Assembly (NCBI GenBank): GCA_002269645.1
Contig: NIVC01005001.1
Coordinates: forward strand, 1-28,819
DNA: 28,819 bases
Direction of reading: 5' to 3'
Source: Macrostomum lignano
Taxonomy: Eukaryota
This document shows positions 5,213 through 10,211 of this stretch, piece by piece. A program made the translations under genes and the position numbers. The stretch's first letter is position 1. Each line of letters opens with the position of its first letter. The notes below the pieces were generated by a model. That model saw nothing but the letters and a program-made list of their open reading frames with translations. It did no database searches and was not told the DNA's origin.

Positions 5213-8200
5213 ATGGCTCTGTTTGGCAGGCTGCTGCCTGCGGCTGGCAATCACGGCAGCGACAGTATTGACGTGATCGACCTGTCAAAACTGATTGACA
5301 GGCGCCCTCCAGCGGAGCCGGTAGCCGAGACCGACGACAGCTCAGATGTTCGTCACCTGTTGGCCCTGACCAAGCGCGGCGAGTTCAGTGCTGCCAGCGA
5401 ACTGGCCGCACAGCTCAGGCAGGACGAGTCGCTAGAGCGGGACTCCGACAAGCGGACAGCGGCGCACTATGCCGCGCTGAGCCCCCAGGCTGCAGGCCTG
5501 CTCAAGCTGATAGTTCAGCACTCTGGCCATCGGTGTCTGAAGATCGCCGATTGCTCGCACATCACTCCGCTGCACCTGGCCGCTGCCAGACAAGCCGCGG
5601 ACGATCTGCGCGAGATCCTGGCCGGTGTACCCAAGCCGGCCGCGTATTTGGCAAAGAGGGACAGCCTTGGCAATACGGTGCCCCACTATGCAGCCTCGAA
5701 CATCGTGCACAAGGATGCAATCAAAGTGCCAGTAGACTGTGTTGGAGTTCAATGCTTGGCTTGGCAAAATGCCAAAGGTCAGCCGGTGCTGCACGTCGGC
5801 TTACTGAATGCGGCAGGTTCTGAGCTGCAGCCGCTTCTAGACCGGGCGGGCTCGGCCCAGGCTCTGACAGATAACGGTGGCAACAGCTGGGCCCACTACG
5901 TAGCAAAGAGAGGCACAGATGACAACTCGGTGTCTCAACTGCTCAACAGACAGGAAATATTGTCTTGGCAGAATTTTCTCAATGAGTCTGTGCTGCATCT
6001 CGTATTAAAGTACTGCAGTCCAGACACCTCGAAGAAGCTCATTAAAATAGCCGGCTCGAATATTATTAGCCTTCGAGATATCAACGGCAACACTTGCGCT
6101 CATTATGCTGCAATGAAGGACGGCAGTGATGATGTAATAACTGAAATAGTTAAAGTGGCCGAACCAATGTGCCTGCGAATGCGCAACGTCAGGGGCGAGC
6201 TCGTGTGGCACCTTGTGCTGAAGAATTGCCGATTTCAAACTGTCAAATCGCTGATGGACGCGTTGAAAGCTGCCCGACTGGACATACCTAACCAGGCTGA
6301 CAGCGACGGGAACCGGAGCGCTCATTTTGCGGTCCTGTCGAAAGTCGACTGCGACAAGAAGATCAACGCACTCGTGACAGAGACTAATGCGGCTTGTCTT
6401 CGATCGCAAAACAAGAAGGGCCAATCAGTGCTGCACCTGGCAGTTCGGCACTGCAGCAATGGAATGGCGGTGCAGCTGGTCGGGCAAGCCAAAGCGGCCG
6501 TTGTTGAACTGCGCGATCAGGACGGGAACACCTGCCTTCACTATGCAGCTCAGTGCGAGCGGCATGAAATCGTTGAAGCCGCGGCTTCCAGACTCGTCGA
6601 CACCAACTGCTGGCTGTGGACAAACAGGCACGACCAGACGGTGATGCACCTGGCTATGAGGCATGCAAGCAGCCAGCCATTTTTAGGGAAATCGTTGATC
6701 CGAAAAATTGTGAGCTTTGTAGATTCGTCAGACAGAAATATGCTCTTTTACGCTTGCACTGGCTGGAATAGCGGTGGCCTTACTATTCAGGGTGACTCGG
6801 CAGCCAAAGAGTTTAAACGACTTGACGTTGACAAGAACACCTTGGCCCACGCTGTCTTCCTCAATGACAGCCAGGCGCAGTCTACAGACGAGTTCTTCGC
6901 CACTCTGAGCAAAGTAATCAAGGCTGGAGTTGACAAGAAAGCTGAGAACAATATGGGGCAGACCTGCCTTCATGGCTCAATCATCGACTTAAACGTTTTC
7001 ATAGATATCCTCGGCAAAGCTGCCGCAGATGCAGAGTTGAAGAAAATGTTTCATAAGTTTCTAACAAATTCCGACGGTGTTCACGCCGTTCACGCCTTTG
7101 CGGGCCGGTACAGCTTGAAGGAATTGGCCCAGTCGCTGGCCGAACTGTCTGACATGCAGTTATCAGAAATGCTACAGCTCACTGTGGCCAAGGGCCCGAA
7201 CAAAGGTGCCACGAGTTTGCACTTTGCCTGCGAAGCCGGTCACGAGGAGAACATGCAATACCTGATGAAGTGCGGCCTGCGGCTTGCCGAGAAAACTCAG
7301 GACGGCCAGTCGTGTATCGACTTCGGCTACGACAAGGGAAAGATGAGTGTCATATTTGGCTTGCCGGGGGTTCAACGGATCGACCTGCTCAGACTCGTTG
7401 ATCCTGCCAACCGGTCGCTGAAGCTGCCCGACCGGTCTACAGCTCGCCACCTGCTGGCTTCAATTTCCGACGAATCGATGCGAGTGACGATACAGCGGGA
7501 CGCGGACATCCGCACCACGGTCGCAAATTCCAGAGGCCCAGAGGCAAGGGAAGAAACTCGCGGCAGGACTGATCTAAAGATTCTGCTACGAGCGCTCCAT
7601 CTGGACTCATCGAAGATTCTTTGCAGCGGGCTTCGGCTTGGTCTGATTTCGCCTAGGACGGAAAATTGCTTTCGAGACTTCATCACCGAACAGTTGAAGC
7701 TGGGAGCTCAGCACACTGAGCTGGAGAGCTTCTCAGAGAAGGAACTCGACGAATTCCTAAGTATTCACGCGCTGAAAGATGACGAAACATCCGAGATGCT
7801 CATCATAGATTTCTGCTTGCACTTTGAAAAGCTAGAAATTCTGCCAGACCTAATCCTCACCAGGCAGTTTCAGTTAATACCCGCCTGCGTTACTCTGCTA
7901 ATCCAGATGAGGCCGAAGATTAGCAGCAAGAAGGGCCGGCACGAGCAGTTGAGGCGGCTGCACAGCGCCATCGTCTGCATCGCGGTGAACGCATTGGACG
8001 AGCTGTTCGTCAATGCGGATCAAACTCAGAAGAATTTTTTATTTAATTATATTTTAGGCGGCATTAAGACAGCGGACGGGGTAAGCTCTGGGCCTCGGTT
8101 TCCCACCAGATCACTCGCTAACGGCTCGCAAGGTTGCGCTGGTGCTAACGTTCAGTCAGCGCGTTGTTCACCTCGACGCCCGGACCAGAGCGTTGACGAA

Positions 8201-10211
8201 GTTGGCACCTACCAGACGCTGTTCGAGCTGATCAAGGAGGCCGACTGCAACGACCTGTTCGCCACCGACTGCGTGTACGAGTTGGTGAAACAAGAATGGG
8301 AGGGTCGCTCGGAGCAAGCCAAAACCAAGCCGGCGTCACCGAAGGCAAAGTTTTACATCCATCTTTTCGGATTCGCCCTGTTTCTAATCTACTTTTCCTG
8401 GTACATCATCGACTTCAAGACTACCTTTCTGAACGTTTGGCCGGATATTATTCTGCTACTGTACACGCTGTCACTGACTGCACACGAACTCAACGACTTC
8501 TGCCGAAGCCTGCGCCCCGCCAGTGCCACTCGAGGCGCTGCAAGCGGACCTGCAGCTGTCCGGAATATTTCCGAGAGATCTTCAACTACTTCGACTGCTC
8601 AGCTCTGGTGTTCATGTGGTTGGGGATCGTTTGGAAGCTGGCGATCCAGGACAATCCGACTCACCCAACTGCCTACACCTGTCAAATGATTTTAAGTACA
8701 TCCTACTTGCTCTGGGATTTCGTTCCGTGTCCTTCTTGAGCTATTCGGAACTAATTGGGCCAGTGATCACCATGCTGGAGCACCTGCTCATCCGAGACCT
8801 GCTGCCGTTTCTGGCCATCATTCTGGTCATCGTGTACTCATTCGGCGTGTTCTTCTTCAATCTGCTGTTCCCCGTGGTGACAGCGCTGGCGTCGGAGACG
8901 AGCTCGGCCACTTACGCTGTTGATGTCTTCGTTCAGGTGTACACTATGCCGCTGAAGCTGCTGTTCACCGACTTCCCGCAGGACCTGGCCGCAGCCAAGG
9001 CTGACATAAGCAACCAGTCAATCAGCAGCGAGGCCGCACATCCGACTGGATATCCGGTGTTTGAGCACTTCGCTCGGTACACCTTCCTACTGGTGTGCAA
9101 CCTGGTCATGCTCAACCTGCTCATTGCGCTATTCAACCTACGCGTGAGCATTATGTCCAGCAAAGCGCGCGGCATCTGGCGCAGATCCTATTTTCACATG
9201 CTGCTCGAGTACAAACGGTCCGGCCTGGTGCCGCCGCCGCTGTCCTTTGTCTACTACGCCTACAAACTGGCTCAGCAGTGCTACAAGTGCCGTCAAAGGA
9301 GTCGGAATGTTGACGACGAAGCCAAGACTAAGGTTGCTGGGGAACTGAAAATCTTTTAACGATTCTACTTTTTCTGGTTTCATTCCGTGCACCGCCAATC
9401 CCAAACCAATTCCTCCCGCAGCGCTGGTGGCTAAGAGAGTCGGACTATCCGCAGGAGTACATCGAGTTCCTGCAGTTCCAGGCGACGCACTTTCGGCGCT
9501 CGCGCCCGAGTCTGTCGCGTCAACTGGAGGCAAATCGGTCCGATGCTGAGGGGCTGAAGTCGCATACGAGAAATGCGCTGGCTGAAGTGCACTCAGAGCT
9601 TGATGAAGCTCTGGTTAGGTGAGTAGCTACGAGTATCTATCTATCTATCTATCTATCTATCTATCTATCTATCTATCTATCTATCTATCTATCTATCTAT
9701 CTATCTATCTATCTATCTATCTATCTATCTATCTATCTATCTATCTATCTATCTATCTATCTATCTATCTATCTATCTATCTATCTATCTATCTATCTAT
9801 CTATCTATCTATCTATCTATCTATCTATCTATTTATCTATCTATCTATCTATCTATCTATCTATCTATCTATCTATCTATCTATCTATCTATCTATCTAT
9901 CTATCTATCTATCTATCTATCTATCTATCTATCTATCTATCTATCTATCTATGTATCTATCTATCTATCTATCTATCTATCTATCTATCTATCTATCTAT
10001 GTATCTATCTATCTATCTATCTATCTATCTATCTATCTATCTATCTATCTATCGATCTATCGATATTGGTGCCTCAATAATTTTCAGGCAGCATATCCGG
10101 CTGCAGAAGCTGGAGGAGCAGCGAGCCGATGACATGAAAGAGTTGCGTCGTCTCGCCCGCCGCCGCTCGAAGAAGTCTGTCAGCGGTGCTCAAGCAGCAA
10201 CCACAGACTGA
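5213..10211 (+). CDS. ankyrin-repeat TRP cation channel (~1480 aa); exons 5213-9332, 9422-9618, 10088-10211; two 1-nt deletions at ~8515-8518 and ~8690-8693
   Basis: About 17-18 ankyrin-type motifs (e.g. DGNTCLHYAA, KGQSVLHLAV, KGATSLHFAC), a pre-S1 segment (LFELIKEADCNDLFATDCVYELVKQEWEG), six hydrophobic helices, S6 NLVMLNLLIALFN, TRP domain ARGIWRRSYFHMLLEYKRSGLVPPPLSF and a C-terminal coiled-coil-like segment. Introns AAG|GTTGCT..CGCAG (9333-9421) and AG|GTGAGT..TTTTCAG (9619-10087) keep the frame through to TGA at 10209-10211. Confidence 0.9.
9422..9618 (+). CDS. TRP channel exon 2 (RWWLRESDYPQEYIEFLQFQ...ELDEALV)
   Basis: Open in phase after acceptor CCCGCAG (ends 9421) and ends at a canonical AG|GTGAGT donor. 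Not in the ORF track. Confidence 0.8.
9634..10053. repeat. (TATC)n / (GATA)n microsatellite, ~105 units, filling TRP intron 2
   Basis: Direct reading; rare TATT and TATG variant units, ending in ATCGAT variants. Confidence 0.99.
10088..10211 (+). CDS. TRP channel exon 3 (QHIRLQKLEEQRADDMKELRRLARRRSKKS...)
   Basis: Acceptor TTTTCAG ends at 10087. The split codon AG|G gives Arg in frame, and the stop is at 10209-10211. Confidence 0.8.

Follow-up and report, generated by a model that had tools for sequence, protein, structure and literature searches.

Introduction

Among flatworm TRP channels, TRPM_MCLZ, the schistosome target of meclonazepam, lacks the MHR1/2-SLOG region and carries ankyrin-like repeats at its N-terminus; its gene has three exons and was earlier annotated as TRPM7-like, and the protein belongs to a 'TRPM-like' clade that adjoins TRPM in all parasitic flatworms (PMC10788528, PMC11731825, PMC12861061). 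This clade is defined by ankyrin repeats that replace SLOG on a TRPM-type core (PMC11731825, PMC12861061). TRPM and TRPS themselves have been described, from a sample without Platyhelminthes, as ankyrin-free and as descending from a SLOG-bearing ancestor (PMC7306681), and the MHR3/4 of TRPM already holds cryptic ankyrin repeats (PMC13143021, PMC11731825). Here we describe a gene of the free-living flatworm Macrostomum lignano, located at 5213..10211 (+ strand) of contig NIVC01005001.1 (assembly GCA_002269645.1), which joins an ankyrin array to a TRPM-type channel body. The whole stretch analyzed, an entire contig of 28,819 nucleotides, is called the window, and all coordinates refer to it. An original prediction, made from the sequence alone, had described this locus as a hybrid TRP channel with an ankyrin array of TRPA length on a TRPM/TRPC-type core. 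The ankyrin-on-TRPM architecture has already been published (2023-2026) and is not a new kind of channel; what the window adds is a gene of this architecture from M. lignano.

Architecture of the Channel Gene

The gene comprises three exons and encodes a conceptual protein of 1480 amino acids, in which an ankyrin array is followed by a series of channel segments. The helical linker or pre-S1 region (7358..8338, +; amino acids 716-1042), containing LPDLILTRQFQLIPACVTLLIQM and LFATDCVYELVKQEW, appears MHR4-like. It leads into an S1-S4 voltage-sensor-like domain (8339..8738, +; amino acids 1043-1176) delimited by predicted helices, alignment to TRPM and TRPM_MCLZ-type sequences and a HMMER match to TRPM3, with the motifs HELND in S2, NYFD in S3 and GFRSV in S4. 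The S4-S5 linker, S5, pore helix and S6 follow at 8757..9140 (+), with the filter LLFTDF at amino acids 1249-1255 and NLVMLNLLIALFN in S6, and then the TRP helix and proline box at 9141..9245 (+), where GIWRRSYFHMLLEYKRSGLVPPPL could be aligned to TRPM3 and is conserved across the family. The C-terminal helices are predicted to be long (residues 738-764 and 768-823 of the model described below). All motifs quoted in the original prediction, IDFCLHF...QLIPACVTLLIQM, LFELIKEADCNDLFATDCVYELVKQEWEG and W..Y..LLEY..VPPPL, are present in the protein.

Sequence and fold comparisons placed this channel half with TRPM. A phmmer search with the region from pre-S1 to the C-terminus returned TRPM3 at 5.9e-15, with an alignment that spans S1 and the TRP box and runs into the C-terminal helices, and the structures of TRPM1, TRPM2 and TRPM8 down to 1e-12; the first non-TRPM match of the single sequence was TRPV4 at 8e-5. 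When a family profile restricted to the core (pre-S1 to TRP box) was compared with the PDB, TRPM2 was found at 6.3e-32 and all of the 60 best matches were TRPM1-8 (114 down to 66 bits), while the TRPM4/5 matches of the family profile begin before S1, in the linker region. Matches at these E-values, for the single sequence and for the profile, are not to be expected by chance. In addition, an AlphaFold2 model of the last 833 residues (predicted local distance difference test score, pLDDT, 65.5) was searched with Foldseek; the matches listed were TRPM in 50 out of 50 cases, with a query TM-score (TMq) of about 0.4-0.46, and the alignments to TRPM3/4/2/8 cover 700-900 columns, linker included. 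Canonical TRPMs (TRPM1-8 and a Nematostella TRPM2-like protein) are thus the best sequence and fold matches of the linker, transmembrane and C-terminal part, at an identity of only about 13-16% in the structural alignments.

The likeness extends to individual residues. The window protein has the TRP box W..Y..EY...PPP and an S6 motif, NLLIALFN, corresponding to NLLIA(L/V)FN in canonical TRPMs, and it keeps TRPM-type residues in S2 (the Glu of HELND vs EE[IV]RQ), in S3 (the Asn and Asp of NYFD vs WN..D) and in S4 (Arg). The S2 Glu and the S3 Asn and Asp occupy the Ca2+-binding positions of the TRPM2, TRPM4 and TRPM8 structures. Unlike canonical TRPMs, the window protein has Asp in place of the S2 Gln and Thr-Asp in place of the Gly-Glu of the filter: the selectivity filter reads LLFTDF or LLFTNF in the window protein and its nearest paralogues, vs YGE/FGE in TRPMs, and the filter Gly is retained in other branches of the window family. 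A further difference is that a long ankyrin array stands where canonical TRPMs have SLOG/MHR1-2, and that neither a Nudix nor a kinase domain is present. Pfam at E<=1 returned ankyrin families only, with no SLOG/LSDAT, TRP_2 (PF08344), Nudix, kinase or PF16519 domain in the window protein, and a hidden Markov model (HMM) built from nine SLOG-bearing TRPMs was negative for SLOG/MHR1-2 in this protein and in all family members. The gene model, the domain order, the TRPM affinity of the core in both sequence and fold, the absence of SLOG and TRP_2, and the paralogue family with its common gene structure (described below) are direct observations, and the channel core is TRPM-type, not TRPC. Of the core type originally proposed, the TRPM half holds, the pre-S1 and TRP-box resemblances to TRPM having been confirmed by the motifs and by the alignment to TRPM3, and the TRPC half falls (no TRP_2, no TRPC among the 60 best core matches).

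The ankyrin-repeat array (5339..7357, +; amino acids 43-715) consists of an N-terminal capping pair and about 18 repeats, as defined by Pfam, motif spacing and AlphaFold2. In this N-terminal part, Pfam found no families other than ankyrin (Ank_2, E 1.6e-25). An ankyrin HMM built on a single consensus lacked sensitivity for such divergent repeats, finding 0-3 per protein, and repeats were counted by motif spacing and from the structure model. In this way 18 TxxH-type repeat cores, spaced 33-44 amino acids apart, were located between amino acids 82 and 700, and an AlphaFold2 model of amino acids 1-760 (mean pLDDT 80) showed 19 successive helix pairs from amino acid 43 to 715, the capping pair included, in agreement with the count of about 17-18 motifs made originally. 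Repeats 1-12 alternate between two types, with 21% identity between repeats of the same parity vs 12.5% between those of opposite parity (p = 2.5e-4). This two-repeat periodicity fits growth by tandem duplication of a two-repeat unit, and the array probably grew in place by that route.

In a Foldseek search, the array matched long solenoids best, headed by ankyrin-1 (5.8e-17), AnkB, NOMPC (1e-14) and a latrotoxin repeat domain, and Drosophila TRPA1, with 17 repeats, was the seventh match at 1.5e-12. The array is therefore TRPA-like in its length but has no specific affinity to TRPA, since ankyrin-1, AnkB, NOMPC and latrotoxin all rank above TRPA1. Derivation of the array from TRPA was rejected as an explanation, the structural similarity being only that of a generic solenoid.

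Relationship to the Flatworm TRPM_MCLZ Clade

In the profile search, the matches ranking below the window family were proteins with ankyrin repeats and a TRPM body from Opisthorchis, Dicrocoelium, Fasciolopsis and Schistocephalus, and several further M. lignano genes also fell into this TRPM_MCLZ-type group. Three of the latter (P0068, P0071 and P0073) contain Ank, PF25508 (TRPM2-like domain) and Ion_trans domains, and a linker-plus-core profile of the group matched the Nematostella TRPM2-like protein at 1.6e-75. In TRPM_MCLZ orthologues the pocket of the voltage-sensor-like domain is formed by H827/H831 in S1, Y864/E868 in S2 and R943 in S4, with F, H or Y three residues after the Arg. The published spacing H-4-H-33-Y-4-E-75-R-3-X was reproduced in the parasite sequences that we recovered, where the cestode has F at X (R+3) and the trematodes have H or Y. 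Additionally, two Opisthorchis viverrini gene models (P0039 and P0158) contain two tandem copies of linker plus transmembrane region, which look like read-through of alternative exons 3a/3b; a duplicated exon 3 with alternative exons 3a/3b has been described for Opisthorchis TRPM_MCLZ (PMC12861061). Because the pocket spacing is reproduced and the tandem copies fit the duplicated exon, the recovered parasite sequences are, judged by sequence, TRPM_MCLZ orthologues. Two other sequences, P0100 and P0156, were considered as TRPM_PZQ orthologues; the published residues match by letter but the spacings do not, so this assignment was not confirmed.

The window protein resembles TRPM_MCLZ (Schistosoma mansoni Smp_333650) in its overall plan, with N-terminal ankyrin or ankyrin-like repeats in the place of SLOG/MHR1-2, an MHR4-like linker, TRPM-type S1-S6, TRP helix and C-terminal helices, and the genes are alike in being intron-poor, with three exons. 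Both proteins have Glu in S2, Asn and Asp in S3 and Arg in S4, and both carry an extra residue in the S4-S5/S5 segment. This extra residue occurs in all window-family and all TRPM_MCLZ-type sequences, accompanied by a Pro in all of them but one (P0028, Ser), and elsewhere among the sampled sequences the two features were found only in one subgroup, whose C-termini are Nudix-like; this is a hint of descent from within TRPM. In profile-profile comparison the window-family linker matched the TRPM_MCLZ-type linker at 95.5% (E 1.4e-8) and gave no significant match to the SLOG-TRPM linker. A neighbor-joining tree of 60 cores (275 columns, 200 bootstraps), unrooted and built without TRPC, TRPN, TRPA or TRPV outgroups, recovered the window family as monophyletic at 98%, or at 100% when P0049 is included, the TRPM_MCLZ-type group as monophyletic at 77.5%, and the sampled SLOG-type TRPMs as a clan excluding both of these at 80%.

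There are also clear differences. In the scanned TRPM_MCLZ-type relatives the Pfam Ank matches are confined to approximately the N-terminal 370 residues, while the array of about 18 repeats in the window protein extends over 670 residues; the filter is FTDF in the window protein vs VGE/YGE-like in TRPM_MCLZ; the intron positions differ; and the published TRPM_MCLZ orthologues are all from parasitic flatworms. Of the TRPM_MCLZ pocket, the window protein retains only one S1 His (the first), Glu in S2 and Arg in S4, the second S1 position being Phe and the R+3 position Ser. Because the pocket residues are largely not kept, we class the window gene by its sequence as a divergent relative of TRPM_MCLZ, not an orthologue.

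Proposed Protein and Function

Taking these comparisons together, we propose, with a probability of roughly 0.8, that the product of the window locus is a subunit of a TRPM-like cation channel that assembles as a tetramer, and that the gene belongs to an M. lignano expansion related to the TRPM_MCLZ clade. In such a subunit a solenoid of about 18 ankyrin repeats, in place of SLOG/MHR1-2, would lead directly into the MHR4-like helical linker, followed by the TRPM-type S1-S6 core, the TRP helix and the C-terminal helices. The protein would be expected to conduct cations, and the array may act as a cytoplasmic scaffold. With Glu in S2, Asn and Asp in S3 and Arg in S4 all conserved, gating is probably exerted via the S1-S4 cavity and its interface with the TRP helix, by analogy with TRPM8, TRPM_PZQ and TRPM_MCLZ. 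The size of the paralogue expansion described below suggests a role in environmental sensing, chemosensory or other, in this free-living worm.

Several observations weigh against this proposal. The AlphaFold2 model of the C-terminal part is only moderately confident. PF25508, detected in the scanned TRPM_MCLZ-type relatives, and Ion_trans both remain below the Pfam threshold in the window protein. With FTDF replacing YGE/FGE, and the Gly lost in this sub-branch of the family, ions may permeate differently or not at all. The S1 HxxxH and the aromatic residue or His at S4 R+3 of TRPM_MCLZ are not kept, and the transmembrane-core profile of the family is no closer to the TRPM_MCLZ-type group than to SLOG-TRPMs (profile-profile scores of 255 and 278, respectively). 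The tree, obtained by neighbor joining only and unrooted, has three clans and cannot say which two are sisters. Finally, the window copy as assembled is frameshifted twice and could be a pseudogene, as considered below.

Origin of the Ankyrin-on-TRPM Layout

The locus had initially been proposed to be a lineage-specific, domain-shuffled channel. It does belong to a flatworm-specific lineage of ankyrin-bearing TRPM-like channels, one that is both large and old, but a shuffle specific to this gene did not stand, as the layout is found in dozens of paralogues and in the TRPM_MCLZ clade. In its general form, domain shuffling would mean that an array derived from TRPA or TRPN was fused to a TRPM core, either recently at this locus or anciently at the base of the flatworm clade, and we hold this to be possible though unlikely. 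If TRPM and TRPS have no ankyrin repeats and go back to an ancestor with SLOG, as described (PMC7306681), a clade that bears such repeats and is confined to flatworms is most simply explained by secondary replacement of the N-terminus, and the presence of the S4-S5 insertion and Pro in the Nudix-type subgroup of TRPM is a hint in the same direction. The recent, gene-specific form of shuffling is excluded by the occurrence of the layout in at least 25 divergent paralogue clusters and in the trematode and cestode TRPM_MCLZ orthologues. As for an ancient import, the array has no specific affinity to TRPA or TRPN, its two-repeat periodicity fits growth in place, and loss of SLOG with expansion of the resident cryptic MHR3/4 repeats offers an alternative to import (PMC13143021, PMC11731825).

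SLOG may have given way to ankyrin repeats long ago, where the flatworm clade began. Given the published view that TRPM and TRPS lack ankyrin repeats and descend from a channel with SLOG, the most economical history would be one in which, early in flatworms, SLOG either was replaced by ankyrin repeats or was lost while the cryptic MHR3 repeats expanded. In Macrostomum this would then have been followed by expansion of the gene family and lengthening of the arrays in place.

In one further protein recovered in the searches (P0130, 1708 amino acids), a few N-terminal ankyrin repeats apparently occur together with SLOG (5e-23 with our own SLOG HMM), a core of TRPM type and a C-terminus resembling Nudix. 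Such an architecture could be intermediate and bear on how ankyrin-bearing TRPM-like channels arose.

Exon Structure and Frame Breaks

Exon 1 (5213..9332, +; 4120 bp), defined from open reading frames (ORFs) and sequence, runs from the start codon to the post-TRP region. An ORF of 1158 amino acids extends from 5213 to 8689 on the + strand, and near 8500-8720 the reading shifts through two other frames, so that the exon is read in three frames (5213..8518, 8518..8715 and 8715..9332). The exon ends with the donor AAG|GTTGCT at 9332/9333, and its junction is confirmed by a paralogue (P0001) that aligns unbroken over amino acids 648-1480 of the window protein. Intron 1 (9333..9421, +; 89 bp, GT..AG, phase 0) has the same position in two other family members, P0004 (locus L001) and P0028 (locus L002). 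Exon 2 (9422..9618, +; 197 bp) encodes RWWLRESDYPQEYIEFLQFQATHFRR and C-terminal helices and matches P0001 and P0002. Intron 2 (9619..10087, +; 469 bp, GTGAGT..CAG) consists almost entirely of a (TATC)107 microsatellite (9634..10061), and exon 3 (10088..10211, +; 124 bp) encodes the end of the C-terminal helix and a basic tail; the stop codon TGA at 10209-10211 is thereby reached via two short downstream exons. Both exon junctions are confirmed by P0001, which has 85% identity to the window protein.

The two frame breaks raise the question of whether the window copy is a pseudogene, that is, a recently disabled duplicate of an intact paralogue. The first break lies in a C4 run (8515..8518, +), where the intact reading LRPRQCHS requires one extra C, and the second in a G3 run (8714..8716, +), where the intact reading LLWGFRSV requires one extra G. 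At the first, the M. lignano UniRef sequence P0002 reads CRSLRPRQCHSRRCKR with zero mismatches, and at the second both P0002 and P0001 read STSYLLWGFRSVSFLSY; P0002 spans both breaks intact with 0 mismatches over 411 amino acids. In favor of a pseudogene, both breaks fall inside 200 bp of the region coding for S2-S4, and M. lignano has many near-identical gene copies (g1/g2/g3 names). Against it, each break amounts to one missing base in a homopolymer run, which is typical of long-read assembly error, the splice signals are preserved, the 4.4-kb coding sequence is free of stops outside these two sites, and the protein-level identity to P0002 is maintained over 411 amino acids. Given that P0002 reads intact through both breaks and the rest is without stops, the breaks are most likely either homopolymer assembly errors or the mark of one very recently disabled copy among near-identical copies; for the window copy we consider pseudogene status rather improbable. 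No second copy or tandem duplicate of the channel gene was found within the window.

Paralogues in Macrostomum lignano

The distribution of the family was taken from an exhaustive profile search covering 1.84 billion representatives, as the word-indexed homologue search had a short reach: with the non-ankyrin part all 14 matches were from M. lignano, and the TRPM_MCLZ-type group profile gave only six matches. The exhaustive search returned about 30 clusters (50% identity) above 300 bits, followed by a clear score gap. At least 25 clusters at this identity share the layout of ankyrin repeats and TRPM core, which supplies the paralogue count that had been called for and amounts to dozens of M. 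lignano paralogues. Members are 1200-2000 amino acids long, with N-terminal regions of up to about 1270 amino acids, and the clusters looked up are all from M. lignano except P0028, which lies on one mis-binned metagenome contig.

P0028 is a 1537-amino-acid member of the family deposited as 'MAG: hypothetical protein [Kangiellaceae bacterium]', encoded at positions 1-5106 of a 5.1-kb contig (L002; JAZBNS010000602.1, GCA_036350755.1) in a Kangiellaceae bacterium bin. This contig contains a GT..AG intron of about 63 bp at the position of intron 1 of the window gene, and because of this spliceosomal intron we regard it as mis-binned eukaryotic, flatworm-like DNA.

The compact exon structure had been taken as compatible with a retro- or recombination-derived origin. 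The near-single 4.1-kb exon is real, exon 1 measuring 4120 bp, but a retro origin is not supported, given the intron position shared within the family. P0004 (39% identity) likewise encodes its ankyrin repeats, linker, transmembrane segments and TRP region in a single unbroken exon, with an intron at the same post-TRP position, and a giant exon 1 with an intron ahead of a 'WW..YP..Y..FL.FQA' motif is common to paralogues of 30-40% identity. As P0004 has the same single exon and intron position, the giant exon is a family trait. That a retroposed, processed mRNA gave rise to the near-intronless structure would accord with a single exon carrying 93% of the coding sequence, but the gene has two spliceosomal introns, the first conserved in position in paralogues of 30-40% identity and in the environmental P0028, and TRPM_MCLZ genes likewise have only 3 exons (PMC10788528, PMC12861061), so that we consider a retrogene very improbable. 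Recent retroposition was rejected on the conserved intron position, and retroposition, if it ever occurred, predates the whole window family.

Regarding gene models, the annotated P0004 (782 amino acids; L001, M. lignano NIVC01003467.1, 2980-8617) is N-terminally truncated, its frame continuing upstream for over 3 kb of sequence that encodes ankyrin repeats. Many other database models of the family are truncated, fused (P0020, P0022) or exon-skipped (P0002).

Comparison with Other TRP Subfamilies

TRPA channels have a TRPA-type transmembrane core behind an array of 14-18 repeats, TRPN (NOMPC) has about 29 ankyrin repeats and a TRPN-type core, and TRPC has about 4 ankyrin repeats, a TRP_2 domain and a TRPC-type core. 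With TRPA1 and NOMPC the window protein shares a long N-terminal ankyrin solenoid on a six-transmembrane TRP channel, and the array length is close to that of TRPA1. The similarity of the arrays is that of ankyrin repeats in general, erythrocyte ankyrin-1 and AnkB scoring higher, and the cores are of a different type: no TRPC, TRPA1 or NOMPC chain was found among the 60 best PDB matches of the core-only profile. Membership of TRPA was accordingly rejected despite the fitting array length; membership of TRPN was rejected because NOMPC falls below every TRPM once the profile is limited to the core, appearing among the best 60 PDB matches solely when the ankyrin columns are included; and the TRPC reading was rejected on the absence of TRP_2, the lack of any TRPC structure among the 60 best core matches, and the 18 repeats. 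The expectation that the protein would not fit TRPM, TRPA, TRPC or TRPN as usually defined was correct, as it combines the array with a TRPM core and lacks SLOG. That it could be a very divergent TRPN, TRPA or TRPC member whose core came to resemble TRPM only through drift we regard as extremely improbable: NOMPC does score 94.6 bits against the full-length family profile, ankyrin stretches included, and a pre-S1 motif of the type 'F.A...CQ.LL...W' is common to TRPC, TRPM and TRPN, but TRPM takes all of the 60 best core matches and all 50 Foldseek matches listed, TRPV4 at 8e-5 is far behind TRPM3 at 6e-15, and TRP_2 was not found.

Significance

A literature search returned no paper on the Macrostomum expansion, on free-living relatives of TRPM_MCLZ, on 18-repeat arrays or on filter variants. 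We would tentatively suggest that the window gene comes from an undescribed, fast-evolving radiation of ankyrin-rich TRPM-like channels that numbers at least 25 divergent clusters and is marked by long arrays (about 18 repeats or more) and an altered filter. The radiation may form an expanded sensory repertoire of the worm and, like TRPM_MCLZ, may stem from a TRPM lineage that secondarily swapped SLOG for ankyrin repeats or regrew them from its cryptic MHR3 repeats. If true, this would qualify the textbook view of TRPM and TRPS as ankyrin-free and would set the evolution of the drug target TRPM_MCLZ in the context of free-living worms. Two drugs against schistosomes, meclonazepam and praziquantel, have TRPM_MCLZ and TRPM_PZQ as their validated or candidate targets, and two large studies of TRPM evolution did not include Platyhelminthes. 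M. lignano is free-living and experimentally tractable, and its dozens of ankyrin-TRPM-like genes provide material for rooting the clade and for judging whether ankyrin repeats were kept in the TRPM lineage or gained there secondarily. The family is in addition a candidate lineage-specific sensory receptor family, and the ways in which its ligand pocket (S1-S4) and pore filter vary naturally are material for structure-function work. For annotation, it is of note that current M. lignano gene models routinely show truncations, fusions or frameshifts in this family.

Other Features of the Contig

Just downstream of the channel gene, a 244-amino-acid ORF (10882-11616, +) encodes a C-type lectin domain (3.7e-6) together with a weakly matching PAN domain. 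On the opposite strand, an ORF similar to linker histone H1 (1815-2435, -; PF00538, 2e-9) has a long tail of KSPAAKK-type repeats and overlaps a 24-bp tandem repeat at 2066-2274, and an exon at 24213-24635 (-) encodes two unkempt-type CCCH zinc fingers (PF23035, 2e-26; PF25427, 1e-25). The contig is unusually rich in tandem repeats (3885-4750, 9634-10061, 13107-13747, 15284-16845, 17545-18076 and 21395-21853), which include a 19-bp unit present in 81 tandem copies and, immediately upstream of the channel gene, a CT-rich 16/133-bp array.

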